This document shows, piece after piece, positions 14,904 to 49,345 of a DNA stretch of 64,000 nt; position 1 is the first letter of the stretch, and every line of letters begins with the position of its first letter. Origin of the DNA: Neoechinorhynchus agilis. Taxonomy: Eukaryota; Animalia; Acanthocephala. The notes under the pieces are model-generated. The model saw only the letters and a program-made list of their open reading frames with translations. It ran no database searches and was not told the DNA's origin. The DNA lies in NCBI GenBank assembly GCA_051530055.1, contig CM121343.1, positions 4,930,389 to 4,994,388 on the forward strand, written 5' to 3'. A program made the translations under genes and the position numbers.

Positions 14904-15683
14904 TTACAATCTCTCGTTGCGTATTATTTGTCCGCTCTGAGGAATTATTTTCCTTGAGGTTTCCTTCTTCGAAGAAATATTTGACACTTCCATCCGACGG
15001 TTACTGTACGCGTACTCGGGCATATTATCCACTAATTCGATTTCTTCCAAATATCCTGGCTTTCGGTGTGAACTTTTGTGCATAATAAAGACATTCTGAA
15101 TGTCGCTACTGAGGTTGTTGTATAGATCCCATCTTTGCAGAAATTTTCTTCTGCGAAAGCGTACAAAATCGCCCAATGTATCAGGATCTATTTCTTTAGG
15201 CTGAACGATTTCCCTAAAACGGCGACTGCCTCTCTTTTCGATGCGGCGTAAACTGGATGTGAGATGCGCTGACAATCGAGCCTTATTTGTTTCATCGAAC
15301 TCTATATATTTGGTCGATAGCCTTTCGAAAACCGCGTTTACATTTTGTGTATCCTGCAATGCTTCGAGATACGGTCTATTTAGCACAAAGCAGTGCGAAG
15401 CATTCAATTGGTTTTCCACTGCACTGTTAGATTCTCTTGCCGGATTGAAACGATGGTGCCGCCTTCTTAGCCAATTGGTACATCGAGTGTCCTTATTTAG
15501 TTTGAGGTAATCAAGACTATCAGTCGTTTGGCCGTCGGTTTTGAATGATCTTACGGCTATAATTGGAGAAATCGCTACTGTTTTCATGGGTCTCCTATTC
15601 CCTGCCCAAAACCGTGTATTGTCTTTAGGCAATTTATTTCTTAACATGGACTTCAATACTGTCCGGGTTTCTTGCTTTTCCAT
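14904..15683 (-). CDS. Hypothetical basic protein, 259 aa, no recognised domain
   Basis: A 780-nt uninterrupted ORF in AT-rich DNA. No motif recognised. Confidence 0.45.
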   Translation of the reverse strand: MEKQETRTVLKSMLRNKLPKDNTRFWAGNRRPMKTVAISPIIAVRSFKTDGQTTDSLDYLKLNKDTRCTNWLRRRHHRFNPARESNSAVENQLNASHCFVLNRPYLEALQDTQNVNAVFERLSTKYIEFDETNKARLSAHLTSSLRRIEKRGSRRFREIVQPKEIDPDTLGDFVRFRRRKFLQRWDLYNNLSSDIQNVFIMHKSSHRKPGYLEEIELVDNMPEYAYSNRRMEVSNISSKKETSRKIIPQSGQIIRNERL

Positions 15684-16479: not shown

Positions 16480-19400
16480 ATGGTTCGAATAATAACACGT
16501 TATTTATTAATCCACAAAAAAATAGGACCCATGTACCTTTGGGTCTTCATGAACACTCGAGTTTTGAAAGGAAAAATGAACGTGGCAGTTTAGTTTTGGA
16601 GTGGATTACAGGTCAGGTCGGATGAGAATTGGCGGTTATTGTTTGCAACAGTTTGCGAGGTTAATCTTTCCTCAGGTTCAACTCCTGTAATGATATCCGA
16701 GAAGATTGGGACCCATGGAAATGGGCCGGAGGTGGAGGGAGATGCGAGGCATAAAAGGATGAAATGAATTGGGATTGCGAGTGTTGTGCTCGTGTGAAAA
16801 AGGAAATAAAATGTGGTAAAAATTGTAGTGGTAGGAATGAGACGCGCTTTGATTGTTTGTTGAGAATCTTATAAAGGTGTTTAGTGCAAGGGGGAAATCA
16901 ACTGTGCAAATTTTAGACGATTGCGAACGAAGGGATAGTTGGTGAGGGAGGGTAAGATAAAGCTGCAGTAAAATTTAAGGAGTTCAGACGAAGGAACTCC
17001 TAAATGGCGGAGGGAAAGTGTAATGCGCGAATCCCATTTCAAGTTTTATTGAAATTGGATACCCAGAATTCTGAGGGAGGTGACTCGAAGGATGTCATTT
17101 GGAAGATCGGGGTAGGATGCGGAGTTACGAGAAAATGACGGGTGGTGCAGAAATCTTTGATGTGGATAGGTGGAAGGGTGATTGTGTAAGAAGGGTGAGA
17201 TCTTTGACATATAAGAAAAGCTTAGAGTGAGAGGAAAGAGGCTGAAGTTCGTTTATGAAAATATTTAAAAGAAGTGGAGACAGGACGGCACCCTGAGGTA
17301 CGCCTTTGGTGAGGGATATTCTGATCAAGGAGGTAAAAAGGCAGTGAATGTATTGTTTTCGATTGTGAAGATAAGGGACCAGCCGGCGGATCTGCCACAA
17401 GTTGAGACCAAAATCGGAACAGGTCTGGAGGAGTAGTGAATAATCTGCGGAGTCGAATGCTTTCGACAAATCCAGTTGAATAAGACGGCTGATGTGAGAG
17501 GAATTATTGTCCAGGTTGCGTAAGAGCGTGCCATAAATGCAAAGTAAAGCATCCGTTACGGAAAACGTGGTACGGAAGCCGAATTGAAGGGGCGATAATT
17601 TGTTGTTGAGAAGTGAAAAAAGGCGAGTTTTAATACATTTTTCGATGGATATAGGACGAAATGATTCAGTGGAAATTGGATGCCCATTTTTCAGAAGAAG
17701 GATCATTTTAGCAGTTTTTAGGCGACCGATGAGCTTGTACCGTCCGATAAACAGATAGTGTATTCGCCAATTCCAGTCTCCGTGTCAACGGGGTAATCAG
17801 AATCTATTATCAGATCGAGTGATTTATGGAGTTGAGAGCAGTGGTAAAGACGACATGGTTTCGCTAGTAGTTGACTAACTTTGTGTCGGTCATCGCGGTA
17901 TAATTGAGGAGGTGATTGGTCAACAGTATCAGCAGATATTTGGCCTACATCTTCCTCTACACTACTTAATCTTTTCCTTTTCCGTCTACTACGTTCATAG
18001 CAATCATTCGACTCTCCTTCGACTTCCATTTTAATCCGTATTAAAAGCTTGTCCATCAGTTTCTCGCATCCGCTATATGATCCACGAATGCTAAATACTT
18101 TGAACAGTCGTCGTTGAGTGGAGTCATCCCGAACGCATGCACTGAACCGAACGGACGTTGGTGACGTCCGCATGATTCTCATTTTATCAAAGATAGGAAT
18201 GTTCAAGATAACACGCTGACTTCCCGCGGATCTAAATAGAATTCGGGCCATCGTTGGTCTTTCAAATCCCGTTTATCCCAGACGGGTGAGCGAGGTTATT
18301 TTTGACGTTGAGGTGTGCGGTGGAGGGACTAATAAGGGCACAAATGGTCAGAGTTCGCGGAAGGAAGGAGTTTAGAGGCGGGTGAATAGGGGCTCGATAT
18401 TGGCGAATACTATGTCGAGTTGAGCGTCAAAACGTGTTGGGAAGTCAATTTGTTGATTCAAATCGTAGAAAGGTGACAGAGGAAATGGTTTATTGAAGTC
18501 GCCTGCAATTAGGAAATGATATGAATTTGCGAAGTCTATGAACTCCATTATGGACACCAGCTGATGTAATGAGTATTCAGGACGAGAGGCAGGAGGGCGG
18601 TAGACGCCAACAATCGTGAATTCACTAAGACCATTCCTTAGAGGAGCTTTGAAATGTGCGGCGATCAATTCTAGAGAGCCTATGAGTGATGAAGAGTAGG
18701 GTAGTGATTGTCGTACGAAGATTGAGACACTCCCCATGGACGGTCCTCGCAAGGAAAAGTGTCCGAGTAGGGTGGTTAGCAATGCTTCAGTTACGATGAT
18801 TACATCAGCTTTTGAAGTAGATGAAATGGGTGATATTTCATTTAGTTTAGGCAGGAGGCTTCGAGCGTTGGGGTAGATTAAGATGGGGAAGGAGATTTTG
18901 TGTTGGGTGGAAATGAGGGAGACTGAGGTCGCTTTGGTCGTCGTGGGTGATAAATTAAGGGAGGAATCGATACAGGTTGTCGATCTCAAAGGACTGACTA
19001 TTACAAAAAGGGAAGTACGGGAGCGAATCGAAAATTTGTGTTGGGATGAGTGATTGGCATCGTGAGGAACGAGTTTTGCGTTGAGAATTTGTGTGGATTA
19101 GCCACGATTGGATATGCCAATTTATGGTATATTTGTGAAGGGGTTGAGTGGTATTTCTTTACTTGTTTCAGGAGGGAGATCGTATTTAATTGGAGTTGCA
19201 CGAAGTCAAAGAAGTTGAGTAATCGCTTAACTCTACGAGTTTTTGGGATGTGTAACATGATCTACGATATTCGTTAAATCGAAGTTTTATACTAAGAAGA
19301 TGATGTCTGCATTGAGTTTGGAGGGGCACTGGAAATATGCGATGATCAGTTTTTATCTGAACAGATTCGAAAAGGAAGTTGTGAAGAAAGGAGCTTGTAT

Positions 19401-20060
19401 TTCCTATTAAGGAGGAGATGCGATTTATATCCTTGAGGGAGGAGTGCAAGACACGACGGGTCGAGTTCAGATCGGCGAGGTCATGACAAAAATGAATCGG
19501 AGGGTTGATTGATTGTGTCGATGTTGAGATCGACCTCATATCCTTATAGTTATTTGCTCCTCCTTTTGCTCTTTTTCCTATTCGTTCAGATGTTTCTTTG
19601 GCCGTTTATTCAACCGTAGCTTTCTTAATAATTACTGGAGGTGAACCGCTGCTCCTATCCTTCACAGTAATTTTAGAATCATTAAGTACACTCGCAGTAT
19701 CTTCAACACAACTCGTTTCCAACGAGTCTTCGTTTGAGTTTGCCGTACTGATGGAACGATTACCTTCGTAGCCACTTCACTAGCCGATTTATGTAAACCT
19801 TTAGCATGTTTTTTAGAATTCTCCATGGGAACCTTTGTCTGCCTCTTTGAAGAGTTAAATTTGTTCTCGTTGCACATTTTGATATCAACCAACTGTTCAT
19901 TTCTAATAACTTCTTTTTCATATTGATTAGCATCAGTTTTGGCATCCTCAGCTGTGTCCACCGCTTCAATTAACGAGTGCTGTAGAGTATCGGTAACTCG
20001 TTCAAAGTACTTTTTAGTGCGATATCGATAAGAGCAGAATGCTCAGCAGAGTTCTGTTCA
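16480..20060 (-). mobile_element. L2/CR1-group LINE, near full length but degenerate (ORF1 remnant about 19000-20060, APE about 18330-18990, RT and C-terminus about 16560-17716, 3' tail about 16480-16560); 5' end uncertain
   Basis: APE: YPNARSLLPKL, FTIVGVYRPP, IAGDFN, QLDIVFAN, NSDH. RT: FRPISI, QFGFR, QLDLSKAFDS, GVPQGAVLSPLL, LYVKD, VTSLRILGIQF. AT-rich tail. Confidence 0.85.
17718..18272 (-). pseudogene. RANBP3: Orphan fragment of RANBP3 (C-terminal half of the Ran-binding domain plus tail) embedded in the LINE
   Basis: ARILFRSAGSQRVILN..M.I...S..SVRFSA...FKVFSI...KL...RI aligns with RANBP3 SRLVMRTQGSLRLILN..MQIDKASEKSIRITA..VKVFLI..QL...RI. An in-frame TAA lies 8 codons upstream of the ATG. 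Confidence 0.75.
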
Positions 20061-20228
20061 CAGTTCATTGATTATTTTTAAAAATTTAGAGTATACAACG
20101 AGCGAGAGAGACGCGACGAAAGAGAGCGATAGGGCGACGAGATAAAGTGAGTGGTCAAATTAAAATAAACTAGATTTCCCTTGCATTGAGGTCTTATTTA
20201 AAGATGTACTTGCGAAGCACACTCATGT

Positions 20229-23162
20229 TTAATAAAAATAAACCGGTGACTTGAATTTTGGGTCGATTGACCCATCCCACGCACTAGAGTTAGTAATCCA
20301 TCCGTCCTCGTTAACGCTTATTTCGCCACATTCAGTGGGATCCTCTTCGTCTTGAATAACCGGGAGAGATTGCGCGTGTCTCAATGTAGACGAGTCGTTG
20401 TGCATCACTCGTTGCCAGGGACTTGCTGGATTGCTATTACCAATAGTTATGTCGAATCCGACATTAGATTCAAGCACTGTGTCCGAAGATACTGGAGATG
20501 AGCTCTAAAAAGGTATGACAAATGATGGATTAATGTAGCTTAAAATTTTAAACTTAAAGATGTACTGCCGCTTGTTAAATATGGTTTAGAAATTGTCGTT
20601 TAAAAGCAACAATCTAGCGAACTTCAAATAAATGTAGTTTCACAACCGCCGAATTTATAATTACGAGTCTATAGAATTCGGTATTGTTTACTTACATTGA
20701 ACGAGTTTTTAAGGTGGCGCCGGTCTCTGCTTATTGGACCATATTTGTTGTGAGTCGGTGTTTCCGAAAATGGAATAACAGTCTCGTGATCGTATGGTCT
20801 AATAAATGGCGATCAAAGGGATGTTCAGAATGTTAGATTGTACCTTGCTGGAATGGAGCTGAGGTAGTTTGATGGCGATGTGTGTTGCCGCTTGAAAGAG
20901 AGCTCCCGTTGCTGCTGTTGACGCAGGCTGGATGGATATAAATTGGGAACGCTTTCAACTCTTCGAAGAACGTCATAAGGATCATCAAAGCTTGCAACAG
21001 GCAATGGATGTAAGGCTAAATATTAGTTTTTGAGTGAAATGAAAGTATAGATTAGAACATACGAATCGGCCGAATTTGACTGAGCAAGTTTTGCTTTCTT
21101 ATTTGAAGGTTTTCGATTTGTTTATCGAGACTGATGATTGCATTCGTCAAATCTCCGTTGGTTTCTGCTCCTTTCATCAGTTGATCACGAATCTCAGGTG
21201 ATCCAAATGCGGCCGATCTTATAATGGGTGGTGGTGGTACCTCAGCGTTGGTATTTCCGTATGCAGCGGTGACGGGCACAGATGAATTTTGGCCCACGTT
21301 CCCAGTTCCATCAAAAGCTTTTAACGGTATTAATAAATCCGATCTATGGTTTGATTGATACACGACAGGTGTAAGACCCGGCGGCGGCTCGACTGTGGGG
21401 GGTGCTTGTAGTTCATATAGTGAACTATTTATTACGTCCGCGATAGAAAGCTGGGACATTGGCTGTTGCTGTTTGGATGGCTGAGAAGGCGGCAGTGGTG
21501 CAGCGATCGGTGGATGTGTTTGGGCCGCCAGAACTCTGGGAGGCATCGAAAGAGATGTCGGTTTCGAGCCTGCTGATATAGACGAGTGAGCAACCTGAGA
21601 AGGCATGAACAATGACATCTTTGGCACTTTGGAAGTTGACACTTGTTGGACAAGTGAAGACATGCTGTTGGACCATGTTCGGCGATGAAGTTTCTGGTTA
21701 GCTCCATTCTGGCAGTCGACTGCAGCCATGACGGATGACACCGCAGCCGCCACATCGTTCAGATTAAGAAATTCTACGGAGTTTGATAGTGAGTTTCTCT
21801 TACTGCAGATGATTGGATCAGATCGATTATGTCGTCGAAACGCTGATTGGATAACGTGAGACTTGGTCGAATAAATAAACAGGCAATTTGAAATTCGATG
21901 AAGACAATTAAATAGAGTCGATTGAAAATCGGTCCATTCTGCATTCCACTGCGGTATTTGAGTATGGTAGACATGATTACAGTCCGCGACAACAGTGGGC
22001 AGGAGTTTGAATGGATCCCCATTATATTGAAGGACGTGCTTAAGTTCACTTATTATTTGAGAGAAGGATTGAACGCCGGGGTGTATGATGGCGTTCGTTG
22101 AAGAGCACTGCTGTGAAGTGGATGAACACTGCTGATGATCATCTGCTTGAATAGGTTGCCTGCTTATCCGATCAATCACAGCGTTCATATGATATTTGTG
22201 ATTCGCGTCACCGTACAATAGAATAGACCAGGTTTCGGGCGAAATTCGAAGTCCCGCGTCCATAGCAATTTGAGCGATTTGAGCGTCGTGTTCACGTCTC
22301 AGCGCTTCATAGGTGCGAAACTCTTCCTTTAATTGCATTAGCGAACTCTCTTCTTGTCTCTTTTGCAACTGCAAAGAATCTTAAGGAACGTGTTGACTAA
22401 GCGGAATGCAACTAACCTTGAAACACGACGCCCTATAAAGTAATTGAACTACATGGCCGATACTGGTTTTCGATGCCCTCGGGAAATGAGGTTGAAGTTT
22501 CTGCACAACAAATAATACGAGCATTTTTCTCGACAAGGCAGATCCATCGCCTAGTGCAACGAGAACTAATTTTAAAGTTTCCTCTTGCATTGCTAAAAAG
22601 GAAAGGTTGAAGGTATTTCAAAGTGCGTACATTCTATCATACCTGGGCCTAAGAATTGGCAACCGCGATTTCTGACAGCTAACCAAAGACTTTTTGTGAT
22701 TTGAGTTTGATTCTGATAAAGCATCAGAAAATCTATTGCAAGGCGTTCAATCAACGATCGGCAATTCCGCAATGCGTTATTGAAGTAAATAAGTCTTGCG
22801 CTACTATCTTCATGTGGAAGTGGTTGTTTAGCGATTCCATTGATCAATGTCATGAGCCGTCGAATGGCCGGTCTGGTCAATGACTGTTGCTTACTAAGTC
22901 CTCCTCCCGTGATTTTGGTTGACGACGGCACCGTATAATTTTGAATACAATCCATCATGTCAACGAGCTGATCGCTGATACTGTCTTCTTTAAACACGGC
23001 ATGCCTGTTACTGTCAATGCAAGCGTTTCCGGTGACAGTGCCGGAGCAAGAAGTGCTAAGGGCGAAATTACCCGCCGGCGCCACCGCCGCTGAAGCGACT
23101 GAAGATGCGTTTGGTGGATCCGGTGGCGCTGTTGAAGTCGCCACAATATCTTGGTTGTTCAT
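20229..23162 (-). CDS. RC3H1: Roquin (ROQ-domain RNA-binding protein); multi-exon
   Basis: [15 protein letters not shown]|[53 protein letters not shown]|[38 protein letters not shown]-terminal YGPISR motif near 20730. Confidence 0.95.
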
Positions 23163-23164
23163 GG

Positions 23165-23830
23165 AGTCGTCGTCGTCGTCGTCGTCTAAAGCTTAGAGCG
23201 CCCCGCGTATATATCTCCCGGAACACTTTTTTTTCACGCTTCCTGCGCTTTGATTGGCGTTAGTGACTAAGTGAAACGACGTGCGAGCACACACAGAGCG
23301 GGAGATATGGAAGCTTTTCTCATTCAGGACCGAAATCCGTACAGTTCGGTCAACTTTTCGAACGGCACCCCACCCTCCCCCTTCCAATGCTGCGGCCTCT
23401 AAGCGAAAACGAGCGAGAGAACGCGCCCAACGCATCGAACGCGACATATACAACAAACCAAGAAGTTCCCGACGAGTTGTACGCGCCGTGGGCATATAGA
23501 GAAAAGAAGACAATGCTGATTTCTCTGTCTGTTCGATGGTGGCACATTTACCACCACCACCACCGCCGCCGCCGCCGCCACCGACGCCGAGTCGCACACG
23601 CGCCCAAACTTCTCTCACCGTGCTGCTTTGCCGTCATCGTTTTCTTCATACGCTGAATGCACGGCGCGTAGGCATGGAAGATCCGGCGCTAAACGCTGTG
23701 CCATCACGTCGACGACCCTGTGCCCCACGCACGCACGAGCGCGCGCGCGAGCGAGCGAGTAACCACTGCTGAGAGGGGACGCAAGGAAGTGACCACTCCG
23801 GGTTAGGTTCCCTTTTTAAATTTAGAAAAG
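23165..23830. promoter_or_regulatory. CpG-rich island upstream of Roquin with (GTC)n and (CCA/CCG)n microsatellites
   Basis: Clearly GC- and CpG-rich relative to its flanks. Minus-strand CCAATC and CAGGAAG motifs. Repeats at 23165-23187 and about 23550-23585. Confidence 0.55.
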
Positions 23831-30610: not shown

Positions 30611-31186
30611 AAGATCCAATGATTGCTTTGATCACACCAGGAAGCTATTAGTTGGAACGGCAGCAATGCGCCATAAATGGAGGCGTCTTCTTCGGATTGG
30701 GTGCGTGTGTACGATTTAAGCGGCGCTATCTACGTCACTCTGTTTTCTTACGCGTCTGCACACGAGAAGATCAGGCGTGAATAGTTCGCGGCGCAAAGGG
30801 AGCGGGGAAACGCTTTCTACTCCCTTTTAAACATTGAATGCTGGATGGATCAGTCGCGGAGGAACGTATTCTCAAATGAGGGTATCGACAAATCGCTTTG
30901 GTACGTTTCCAATAGGATTTAATGCCATTTGGGTTTCGACAAGGAAAATATTTCAACAAAAACTGACTGGGTTTGACATTCCGTAGTTGTGCTGAGAGGG
31001 TCAAGTGGACTAAAGCTCTTGATCCCAGTTTGTTGGGTCAACTGGTTCGAATCCGTTACCACCAATGACGTACGGAGACGAAAAAGCTCGTTGAAGGGAG
31101 GAGGTATCTGAGAATCCGGAGGAATGCGTGGTTTGGCTTTATGCCTAAAAAATAAGCCGGGTATAAGGGACAAACTAAAAATTTAA

Positions 31187-31410
31187 TATTATTTTGGTGA
31201 TAATAATCCCGGTAATAGCACATTTGATTTATTGGAAATATTTCGCGATAACACGAACTCGAATATTTAAAAACTTAAGCAATGACTGATGAGGCGAGGT
31301 CACCTCGCGAAATATATCCAATAAATCAAATGTGTTATTACCGGGAATATTTTGACCAAAATAATACTTTGACTAATCCGAAGGATTTTTTTATCGATGA
31401 TTAAAAATTT
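31187..31410. repeat. Foldback (inverted-repeat) element related to the 48-49 kb array
   Basis: Arms TATTATTTTGGT..AATAATCCCGGTAATAGCACATTTGATTTATTGG..TCGCGA and TCGCGA..CCAATAAATCAAATGTGTTATTACCGGG..ACCAAAATAATA. Followed by CCGAAGGATTTT..TCGATGATTAAAA as in the array. Confidence 0.85.
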
Positions 31411-39177: not shown

Positions 39178-40956
39178 GAAAGGTCGGATAAGAGTCGAAA
39201 TTGGGAGTGATGCGATCCGGGGGACTGAGATTTCTCCGCAGAATAATCCGGTAGTTTATATCGCCTACAACTTTCTAGTGAATCTATCCAAGTCGAAATT
39301 CAGGGTGAGTGGGTCTTATCGACTAAAGCACCCGCCGCGAGTAGCTCGCCTCAAGTGTCCTCGAACTGACGAAAGGTCCGATAAGATTCGAAATTCGGCG
39401 AAAAGCGAACCTTCAAGTCCGAGATTTCGCAGTCCAATAATCCGGTGGGTTTTATCGCCTACAACTTTCTAGTGGGTCTATCCAAGTGAACATAAACTGG
39501 CTCATGGATAAGTCGGATAAGGTTCGAAATTCGGGGTGATGCGATCCGGGAGGAAGGAGATTTCTCCGCTGAATAATTGGATGGGCTTCATCGCCTACGA
39601 CGCCGCCGCCCCTGCGTGAGTGGTTCGCTCTTAGTGTTCTTGAATTGACGAAAGGTCGGATAAGATTCGAAATTCGGCGAAAAGCGAAACTCGAGGATCG
39701 AGATTTCGCAGTCCAATAATCCGGTGGGTTTTATCGCCTACAACTTTCTAGTGGATCTATCCAAGTGAAGTCGAAATTTGGGGTGAGTGGGTCTTATCGC
39801 TTACAACATTCTAGTGGATCTATTCAAGTGTCCTCGAACATACGAAAGGTCCGATAAGATTCGAAATTCGGGGCGATGTGATCAGGGAGGACGGAGATTT
39901 CTCGGCCGAATAATCCGGTAGGTTTCATCGCCTACGACCACGCTACCGCGCAAGTGGTTCTCCCCAAGTGTCCTCGAATTGACCAAGGGTCCGAAAAGAT
40001 TCGAATTTCGGGGTGATGCGCACTTAAAGGACGGAGATTTCGCAGTTCAATAATCCGGTTGGTTTTATTGCGTACAACTTTCTGGTGGGTCTATCGAAGT
40101 GAACTTGAACTGACTAAAGGATAAGTTCGATAAGAGTCGAAATTCGGGTGACGCGATCCGGGAGGAAGGAGATTTCTCCGCTGAATGTGATCCGGTAGGT
40201 TTCATCGCCTACTGTCCCACCCCTGCGCATGTGGTTCGCCCCAAGTGTCCTCGAATTGACCAAGGGTCCGAAAAGATTCGAATTTCGGGGTGATGCGCAC
40301 TTAAAGGACGGAGATTTCGCAGTTCAATAATCCGGTTGGTTTTATTGCGTACAACTTTCTGGTGGGTCTATCGAAGTGAACTTGAACTGACTAAAGGATA
40401 AGTTCGATAAGAGTCGAAATTCGGGTGACGCGATCCGGGAGGAAGGAGATTTCTCCGCTGAATGTGATCCGGTAGGTTTCATCGCCTACTGTCCCACCCC
40501 TGCGCATGTGGTTCGCCCCAAGTGTCCTCGAATTGACCAAGGGTCCGAAAAGATTCGAATTTCGGGGTGATGCGCACTTAAAGGACGGAGATTTCGCAGT
40601 TCAATAATCCGGTTGGTTTTATTGCGTACAACTTTCTGGTGGGTCTATCGAAGTGAACTTGAACTGACTAAAGGATAAGTTCGATAAGAGTCGAAATTCG
40701 GGTGACGCGATCCGGGAGGACGGAGATTTCTCCGCTGAATGTGATCCGGTAGGTTTCATCGCCTACTGTCCCACCCCTGCGCATGTGGTTCGCCCCAAGT
40801 CTTCTCGAATTGACGAACGGTCTAATAAGAGTCGAAATTGGGGTGACGCGATCCGGGAGGACGGAGATTTCTCCGCTGAATGTGATCCTTTGGGTTTCAT
40901 CGCCTACTGCCCCGCCCCTGCGCAAGTGGTTCGCCCCAAGTGTCCTCGAATTGACG
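39178..40956. repeat. CpG-rich tandem satellite with ~135-140-bp monomers (two ~190-bp variants) and a 277-bp dimeric higher-order repeat
   Basis: Recurrent GATAAGA(T/G)TCGAAATTCGG, GGAGATTTC and ATCGCCTAC. GACCAAGGGTCC recurs at 39981, 40258 and 40535 (period 277). Confidence 0.95.
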
Positions 40957-48022: not shown

Positions 48023-49345
48023 CAAATTATACCTTTTTTGAAAATAATCCCGGTCATAACATATTTGATTCATAGGGGAAATACGTTATGACCAGGATTT
48101 TTTGCAAAAAAAGTATAATTTGATTAACCCGAAGGATTTTCACTGTCGATGATTAAAATGATTTTAAAACTGCCGATTGGCTTCGAAGAGGCACACAATC
48201 TTGTACGCCTTAAGTTTTTAAAGTCACAAATATTTAAAAACTTACAAGCAACAACCTTGATAAAAAGGCGAACAAGATTGTGAGCTTCTCCGAAAACAAT
48301 CATTTGAATTTCTTCACCATATAAAACAACGAATTGTATAAATGCATTCAAATTTATCATCGACAAAGAAAATCCTTCGGGTTAATCAAATTATTTGTGT
48401 TTGAAAATAATCCCGGTAATAACTTATCAAACAATGACTGAGGAGGCGGCGAGGTTACCTCCTTCGAGATGTTTCCCCTATGAATCAAATATTTTATGAC
48501 CAGGATTATTTTCAAAAAAAAGTATAATTTGATTAACTCCAAGGATTTTCTCTGTCGATGATTAAAATGATCTTAAAACTGTCGATTGGTTTAGGAGAGG
48601 CACAATCTTGTACGCCTTTTGATCTAGGTCGTTTGGAAGTTTTTAAATATCTGTGAGTTTAAAAACTTACAAGCAACGACCTTGACCAAAAGGCGTACAA
48701 GATTGTGTGCCTCTCCGAAAACAATCGGCAGTTTTAAAATAAAATCATTTTAATCATCGACAAAGAAAATCCTTCGGGTTAATCAAATTATTTGTGTTTG
48801 AAAATAATCCCGGTAATAACTTATCAAACAATGACTGAGGAGGCGGCGAGGTTACCTCCTTCGAGATGTTTCCCCTATGAATCAAATATTTTATGACCAG
48901 GATTATTTTCAAAAAAAGTATAATTTGATTAACCGGAAGGATTTTCTCTGTCGATGATTAAAATGATCTTAAAACTGTCGATTGGTTTAGGAGAGGCACA
49001 ATCTTGTACGCCTTTTGATCTAGGTCGTTTGGAAGTTTTTAAATATCTGTGAGTTTAAAAACTTACAAGCAACGACCTTGACCAAAAGGCGTAGAAGATT
49101 GTGTGCCTCTCCGAAAACAATCGGCAGTTTTGAAATAAAATCATTTTAATCATCGACAAAGAAAATCCTTCGGGTTAATCAAATTATTTGTGTTTGAAAA
49201 TAATCCCGGTAATAACTTATCAAACAATGACTGAGGAGGCGGCGAGGTTACCTCCTTCGAGATGTTTCCCCTATGAATCAAATACATTATGACCGGGATT
49301 ATTTTCAAAAAAAGTATAATTTGATTAACCGGAAGGATTTTCTGT
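48023..49345. repeat. Tandem array of ~396-bp units (~3.3 copies), each made of two hairpin modules (~268 nt and ~117 nt)
   Basis: CGACAAAGAAAATCC recurs at 48361, 48758 and 49154. Module B (48524-48791) and module A (48797-48913) are each self-complementary. Confidence 0.95.

Follow-up and report, generated by a model that had tools for sequence, protein, structure and literature searches.

A RANBP3-like coding fragment between two arms of a LINE in the acanthocephalan Neoechinorhynchus agilis

In this study, we analyzed a 64-kb stretch of CM121343.1 (assembly GCA_051530055.1, ~4.93-4.99 Mb) from Neoechinorhynchus agilis, hereafter called the window, in which a frame related to the gene for the Ran-binding protein RANBP3 lies inside a long interspersed nuclear element (LINE). 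The assembly is a MaSuRCA hybrid draft from Illumina, Oxford Nanopore (ONT), and few HiFi reads with Hi-C scaffolding (PMC12690905). Coordinates are window positions (W), and all features tied to the chimera are on the minus strand. A preliminary description of this DNA had proposed that part of a host RANBP3 gene was captured into the linker between the endonuclease and the reverse transcriptase (RT) of a LINE. The core of that proposal held up in our analysis. An APE-type endonuclease followed by an RT on the same strand flank a stop-free frame that encodes the second half of a RANBP3-type Ran-binding domain (RanBD), and the piece seems to be derived from RNA, as it lacks introns at two conserved positions, is an orphan in the window, and sits between collinear arms. 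The parts of the chimera are as follows:

19098..19540, minus strand: LINE arm A, part upstream of the endonuclease (G 12.2%, C 28%; GC-skew profile)
18291..19097, minus strand: LINE arm A, predicted APE-type endonuclease (motif series, frame listing)
18263..18295, minus strand: 5' junction between post-APE LINE sequence and the RANBP3 fragment, containing the TAA at 18275-18273
18040..18272, minus strand: RANBP3 fragment part 1, C-terminal ~60% of the RanBD (residues ~56-116 of 138 in 2Y8F; residues 160-236 of the homologue P0052)
17721..18039, minus strand: RANBP3 fragment part 2, post-domain tail (P0052 residues ~237-336; phmmer, tblastn)
17718..18251, minus strand: annotated single-exon gene for a 177-aa hypothetical protein, from the ATG at 18251 to the junctional TAA
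17716..17727, minus strand: 3' junction between the RANBP3 tail and the LINE RT, gtcgcc/taaaaactgc
17125..17717, minus strand: LINE arm B, RT domains 1-5 (197 codons open; Pfam RVT_1)
16488..17124, minus strand: LINE arm B, frameshifted remainder of the RT and 3' end, with the terminus ...GGTACATGGGTC...ACGTGTTATTATT
17145..18050, minus strand: patch common to the window and a second locus, L001 (L001 9980-10860, 99.4% identity)

Two LINE arms around a RANBP3-like frame

The endonuclease arm contains an open frame of 241 codons (19097..18375), a frameshift before the NSDH motif, and ~18 further LINE codons after SDH. The APE motifs occur in the correct order, with NARS at 18869, TEA, VYRPP, GDFN at 18503, DFPTR, and NSDH at 18355. 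The Pfam match to Exo_endo_phos was weak (E 0.016, 15.4 bits against a cut-off of 24.5), and the predicted identity of the endonuclease rests on the full motif series. On the other side of the insert, the RT begins at KTAKMILLLK..FRPISI (17718/17661) and is recognized as RVT_1 (E 3.4e-19, 69.8 bits against a cut-off of 29.6), with a degenerate catalytic box that reads YVKD instead of YxDD. Arm B RT is 32-34% identical to the LINE RTs of the loci L005 and L006, and the LINE homology to the relative L005 begins with the first query residue (KTAK). RT domain 0 is absent, and the 3' junction lies at a (W)K-x-A motif just before RT domain 1. The LINE is frameshifted before NSDH and after 17125, its linker and RT domain 0 are replaced, and the copy is dead, with no intact continuous ORF2.

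Both arms are poor in G (G 12-13%, C 28-32%), uniformly across the coding strand of 16488-19540 and unlike the surrounding host sequence. The composition changes at both fragment junctions, as had been noted in the preliminary description, to a G content of 22.7%; the 5' switch falls within 18263..18295. The distance from SDH to the RT is 634 nt, versus 717 nt in the distant relative L005, where the (S/T)DH motif and the K-K-A-I-V motif ahead of RT domain 1 served as end points. The earlier statement on the matching size of insert and linker thus holds approximately; some 655 nt of LINE sequence, including RT domain 0, were exchanged for about 555 nt of RANBP3 sequence. The LINE 3' terminus ACGTGTTATTATT is common to three copies, one in the window and two in L001, and is followed by unrelated flanks; it is a genuine element terminus. 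Judged by strand, order, rare composition, spacing, and 3' terminus, the two arms belong to one predicted element. Other copies of this element were not found within the window, and close members of the LINE family were not found in protein collections, where the best RT matches were 32-40% identical. The called open reading frames (ORFs) of the best RT relatives gave no APE match in Pfam, and L005 was usable by motif spacing alone.

The frame between the arms comprises 184 codons without a stop (18272..17721, minus strand) and is bounded by TAA at 18275-18273 and at 17720-17718. None of 5000 shuffles of this frame stayed open. The top three PDB matches of the fragment (phmmer) were the human RANBP3 RanBD structures 2Y8F, 2Y8G, and 2CRF (E 0.0028), and the first 75 fragment residues align with chain residues 56-116 of 138 in 2Y8F. 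A complete RanBD is not present, as the match begins at residue ~56 of the 138-residue chain. An exhaustive phmmer search of 1.84 billion representative proteins with the fragment returned seven proteins. The closest full-length match was P0052, a 430-aa RanBD protein (E 1.7e-16, query 9-182 on residues 160-335), followed by KAI0990600, a RANBP3-like protein of the acanthocephalan Pomphorhynchus laevis (E 4e-6), and RanBD1 proteins of the rotifer Rotaria (E 3e-4); P0001, the copy encoded in L001, was also among the seven. The homologues P0052 and the P. laevis protein carry PF00638 (Ran_BP1). Pfam did not call the half-domain of the fragment at E<=0.1, nor at E<=10 on the translations of stop-masked frames from 17700-20230. 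At the 5' junction, the RANBP3 homology begins at ERP/TMAR.

All 13 columns that are invariant among the homologues are retained in the fragment. Within the RanBD part, the fragment is 47% identical to P0052 and 43% to P0054, compared with 48% between these two acanthocephalan homologues. By these identities and the retained columns, the insert looks fresh and undecayed. Its tail is KRKR-rich, continues with CRLY...EYTICLSDGTSSSV, and is cut off within the coding sequence (CDS). The phmmer and tblastn alignments of the tail extend to residue ~336/337 of the 430 residues of P0052, which identifies it as RANBP3-derived and not LINE linker. P0052 reaches 159 aa upstream and 94 aa downstream of the matched part. 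Because it runs 94 aa past the last aligned residue, the TAA at 17720-17718 is junctional and not the natural stop of RANBP3. From these alignments, the fragment is an internal CDS piece that corresponds to codons ~152-337 of a homologue of ~430 aa. Its composition (G 22.7%, C 21.1%) is host-like, as in the neighbouring Roquin exon. No poly(A) or 3' untranslated region (3'UTR) is present at its junction with the RT, which lies in another reading frame.

The preliminary description had depicted the flanking LINE as riddled with stops and had concluded that the fragment is either later or under selection. This picture had to be revised. The adjoining LINE frames are open for 241 and 197 codons, which is as improbable as the openness of the insert, and because they are equally open the conclusion fails; nor do the five substitutions between the two copies (see below) inform on it.

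We found no part of RANBP3 beyond 18272..17721 in the 64 kb, using tblastn with P0052-P0064 and phmmer --max on 852 six-frame tiles, in agreement with the earlier impression. The first half of the RanBD (TGEE..KLF.F..W.ERG.G), strongly conserved elsewhere, is absent from all six frames of the window, as are the N-terminal 159 and C-terminal 94 residues of the homologue. Collinear resemblances to P. laevis RANBP3 at the end of region X (see below; shuffle P ~0.02) and downstream of the LINE (shuffle P ~0.004) were rejected, because equal or higher scores occur at many unrelated sites in the window. A paralogue of the fragment at the DNA level was not found in the flanks. ATG12 is the sole neighbour of RANBP3 that is called in P. 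laevis; neither the window nor L001 contains it, which is uninformative.

The P. laevis RANBP3 gene is 18 kb long and has introns at residues 187/188, 229, 275/276, 323, and 368. The introns of the Rotaria gene match those at 187/188, 229, and 275/276, and two of the shared introns fall within the span of the fragment (at ARL/IMR and FII/KSS in Rotaria). Being common to Rotaria and P. laevis, these introns are older than the split between bdelloid rotifers and acanthocephalans. The window sequence is continuous over positions 229 and 275/276, and probably also over 323 and 368. The fragment begins ~10 codons upstream of the 229 position, and its ends are not at exon borders. The uninterrupted passage over conserved intron positions points to a spliced mRNA, and the template of the fragment was probably a spliced RNA.

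A second copy and the surroundings of the locus

In a word-index protein search, the fragment had a single match besides itself, KAL7668989.1 (P0001, 103 aa). It is encoded in L001, ~67 kb away on CM121343.1 and in the same orientation; the RANBP3 tail and RT together occupy L001 9970-10884. Over the patch W 18050..17145 (905 bp), L001 differs by 5 substitutions and a 27-bp deletion in L001. All 5 substitutions lie in the 330-bp RANBP3 tail and none in the ~550 bp of RT (P~0.007 if evenly spread); 3 are synonymous and 2 are non-synonymous, which is uninformative on selection. The tail-RT junction gtcgcc/taaaaactgc is identical at both loci. Since these have different flanks, the 3' junction is not an assembly artefact. 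The concern, already present in the preliminary description, that the junctions arose by misassembly is thereby settled for the 3' junction and stands for the 5' junction, which was seen at the window locus only. Its idea that other LINE copies may carry the insert is likewise borne out in part, as L001 contains the tail-RT junction but has no APE arm, 5' junction, or RanBD half.

Beyond the right edge of the patch, L001 is a LINE copy related at ~75-80%, and both its 3' end and its flank are its own. On the left, the patch adjoins X', the counterpart of region X of the window, and homology to the RanBD part is lacking there. Identity breaks at the points of rearrangement, and for this reason L001 is best read as an older, diverged LINE copy into which a stretch like that in the window was recently copied by ectopic conversion or break repair. 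We rejected L001 as a segmental duplicate, as a 5'-truncated retrocopy of the window locus, and as the result of plain internal deletions, in view of its mosaic of 67%, 99.4%, and ~75-80% identity. No third annotated copy was found at 90% identity by cluster look-up. A further 5'-truncated copy of the LINE family (L001 8976-9425, ~75% identical) with the terminus ACGTGTTATTATT lies ~100 bp upstream of X', so that two LINE 3' ends stand there nearly in tandem.

Upstream of arm A on the minus strand, the window contains the following features:

23162..20229, minus strand: Roquin-like gene (850 aa, ROQ domains)
19641..20105, minus strand: region X, A-rich and non-LINE-like (blastn and global alignment to X' in L001)
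19640..19541, minus strand: A-rich gap of 100 bp between region X and LINE arm A

Region X and X' lie directly 5' of LINE-derived sequence at both loci (window 19641-20105; L001 9515-9960). X' is 67% identical to region X with many indels (W 20093..19692 = L001 9541-9906), and the homology begins at the same point in both, CGTTGTAT[A/G]CTCTAAA. Reading frames are broken in both. Region X has no Pfam or PDB match and no significant similarity to RANBP3; it may be the 5' end of the element, a co-duplicated flank, or another captured piece. Region X overlaps with a gene annotated for 117 aa (window 20226..19662), and the Roquin-like gene ends ~120 bp upstream of region X. Upstream of the Roquin-like gene on the same strand, a poly-Gly run of G-rich codons occurs in the translated frames at ~23550-23633.

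Downstream of the LINE 3' end, at a distance of ~800 bp, a single-exon gene for a 259-aa protein is annotated (14904-15683, minus strand), for which no precomputed Pfam family is recorded. The window also contains two tandem arrays, one at 39852-40871 (277-bp unit, 3.7 copies, 94% matches) and one at 48356-49343 (396-bp unit, 2.5 copies, 98% matches). The similarity of parts of the 396-bp array to window 31178-31402 and to L001 4313-4412 and 16860-17100 indicates a dispersed repeat family.

Origin of the chimera

The chimera has its parts head-to-tail in one orientation, with no poly(A) between them and with a 3' part that ends in the LINE 3' end. We favour, at an even chance, the reading that this is a dead APE-type LINE in which the segment between APE and RT was replaced by a piece of spliced RANBP3-like mRNA through two template jumps. 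The synthesis of cDNA would start at the 3' end of the LINE RNA and proceed through the RT-coding part. A first jump would lead onto RANBP3 mRNA, of which ~555 nt would be copied, and a second jump would return to the LINE RNA directly after the endonuclease region, from where synthesis would proceed towards the 5' end. We infer that the LINE reverse transcriptase made both jumps, in this order, within one retrotransposition event. The double jump is favoured because a single event explains why the template was spliced, why the joints are direct and the orientation is the same, and why the arms are collinear. In a later event, ectopic conversion or break repair would have transferred a stretch of ~0.9 kb across the tail-RT junction to the diverged LINE copy at a distance of 67 kb.

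Several observations weigh against the double jump. It has the special requirement that the polymerase returned to the same LINE RNA, and at a nearly collinear position. No target site duplication (TSD) was found, with no shared word of at least 8 nt between the 3' flank and either candidate 5' flank (20105 or 19540); insertion by target-primed reverse transcription (TPRT) at this site is therefore putative. The 5' junction was observed once, in a hybrid MaSuRCA draft assembly, and the double jump gives no account of region X beside the element. If N. agilis has lost the two introns, as it may have, a DNA template is just as possible. Apart from P0001, no N. agilis protein near to the fragment, and hence no parent, emerged from the exhaustive representative search and the look-up of 90%-identity clusters; a profile search for the parent returned only rotifer proteins, P0052, and two Logan proteins, and missed even P0054. 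Finally, the patch in L001 shows that patching at the DNA level has occurred at these loci, which favours a repair origin.

In such a repair, which the preliminary description had named as its second option, a resident LINE would have been broken in the linker between APE and RT, ~0.65 kb would have been resected, and either a RANBP3 cDNA would have been captured or an intronless gene copied. We regard this as possible, though unlikely. It fits the anatomy as well as template switching does and needs no TSD, and the 905-bp patch of L001 (99.4%), with LINE homology at one edge and a non-homologous joint to X' at the other, documents templated patching of DNA between the two loci. It would require a deletion and an insertion of similar size at one spot. 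The capture of a cDNA with both ends internal to the CDS is rare, and a DNA template demands a parent without two introns that rotifers and P. laevis have in common. It is improbable that the fragment is instead a surviving exon of a native RANBP3 gene, framed by two independent LINE insertions, with the first half of the RanBD and the C-terminus lost by deletion. Such a remnant would agree with the lack of a further N. agilis RANBP3 protein in protein collections, with X' adjoining the tail in L001, and with the faint collinear likeness to P. laevis RANBP3 in the end of region X (NEDS..SSGS..T.(K/E)E) and downstream of the LINE. These resemblances lie within the noise of the whole window and are unseen by phmmer. 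Further points against a native remnant are the absence of the conserved first half of the RanBD from the entire 64 kb, the two missing conserved introns, and broken frames in region X next to an intact fragment. Moreover, a simple TPRT insertion cannot give an arm with the LINE 5' part alone, and the collinearity, composition, and spacing of the arms would be coincidental. An assembly error that wrongly joined the APE arm to the RANBP3-RT part is highly improbable. The 5' junction was seen once in a hybrid draft (PMC12690905), and a near-identical 0.9-kb repeat lies 67 kb away. Set against this, two loci that differ in their flanks independently contain the 3' junction, the 5' junction is not part of the repeated patch and its sequence is unique within the 84 kb examined, there are no Ns, and the arms are collinear parts of one element type.

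A separate question, which overlaps these models of origin, is whether the product has a function. The 177-aa ORF and its 103-aa paralogue could be domesticated, that is, expressed and selected, for example to interfere with CRM1/Ran export. The 184 open codons with all invariant RanBD residues, the annotation of both copies as genes, and the 3 of 5 inter-copy differences that are synonymous would agree with this idea. Against it, the neighbouring frames of a dead LINE are as open, so that openness signals only youth, and the proportion of synonymous differences is not significant (estimated P~0.13). The RanBD fold lacks its first ~50 residues, the copy in L001 is entirely without the RanBD part, and the exhaustive phmmer search found no homologues of the short protein in other species. 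We therefore consider domestication hardly probable. A transcribed and selected gene or mobile module, present in two copies and encoding a truncated RANBP3 peptide with half a RanBD and a KRKR tail resembling a nuclear localization signal (NLS), appears a shade less probable still. The 177-aa ORF is probably an accidental product without a Ran-related function, considering its start at an internal Met, its end at a junctional TAA, its position out of frame with the RT, and its partial RanBD.

Relation to known chimeras and meaning of the finding

Double template jumps that yield tripartite chimeric retroelements have been documented (PMC2104539). Our locus resembles these Buzdin/Gogvadze-type chimeras in that different transcripts are fused directly, in one orientation and with no poly(A) between them, in that the 3' part is a LINE piece with the LINE 3' end, and in that three-part elements arise from double jumps. 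It differs in that the outer parts stem from the same LINE and are nearly collinear, so that the host piece replaces an internal segment and not the 5' end. In addition, the host piece comes from the interior of a protein-coding mRNA and not from a small or non-coding RNA, and no TSD was found. Chimeras of LINE-1 and mRNA are also documented, with template switching, RNA ligation, and splicing discussed as routes (bioRxiv 10.1101/2025.02.02.635956). The mammalian examples likewise join an mRNA fragment to a LINE; they mostly contain 5' exons upstream of LINE-1, often joined at splice sites, whereas here the fragment ends off conserved exon borders and has LINE sequence on both sides.

A classical processed pseudogene or retrocopy was considered as well. 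It would share the use of LINE machinery and the absence of conserved introns expected of a spliced mRNA, but it was rejected, as there is no 3'UTR, poly(A), or TSD, both ends are internal to the CDS, and the piece is embedded in a LINE. The capture of cDNA or other templated sequence at double-strand breaks fills the gap with a short foreign stretch while resident sequence is deleted. The outcome could equal the chimera seen here, and only junction details and the structure of the parent gene separate the two. With respect to RANBP3/Yrb2-type proteins, 18272..17721 is clearly homologous to the C-terminal part of the RanBD plus a tail of the acanthocephalan type, and it lacks their N-terminal region, ~50 residues at the start of the RanBD, and ~94 residues at the C-terminal end.

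To our knowledge, the mobile elements of the phylum Acanthocephala are almost unstudied. The locus provides a clean natural chimera of LINE, host mRNA, and LINE in this phylum, with a spliced coding fragment in the place of an internal LINE segment. We consider it a real, rather rare by-product of reverse transcription without sign of function, and with a single dead locus and a partial copy its wider importance is modest. The 177-aa protein and KAL7668989.1 are flagged by this analysis as products of a transposon chimera. Were the truncated RANBP3 peptide functional after all, it might act on Ran/CRM1 export in the parasite or spread via the LINE 3' end. If the double jump is true, template-switch chimeras extend to a new animal lineage and to a configuration where the polymerase goes back to its own RNA. 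LINEs could in this way swap internal modules and seed small new ORFs, two of which are annotated here as genes.

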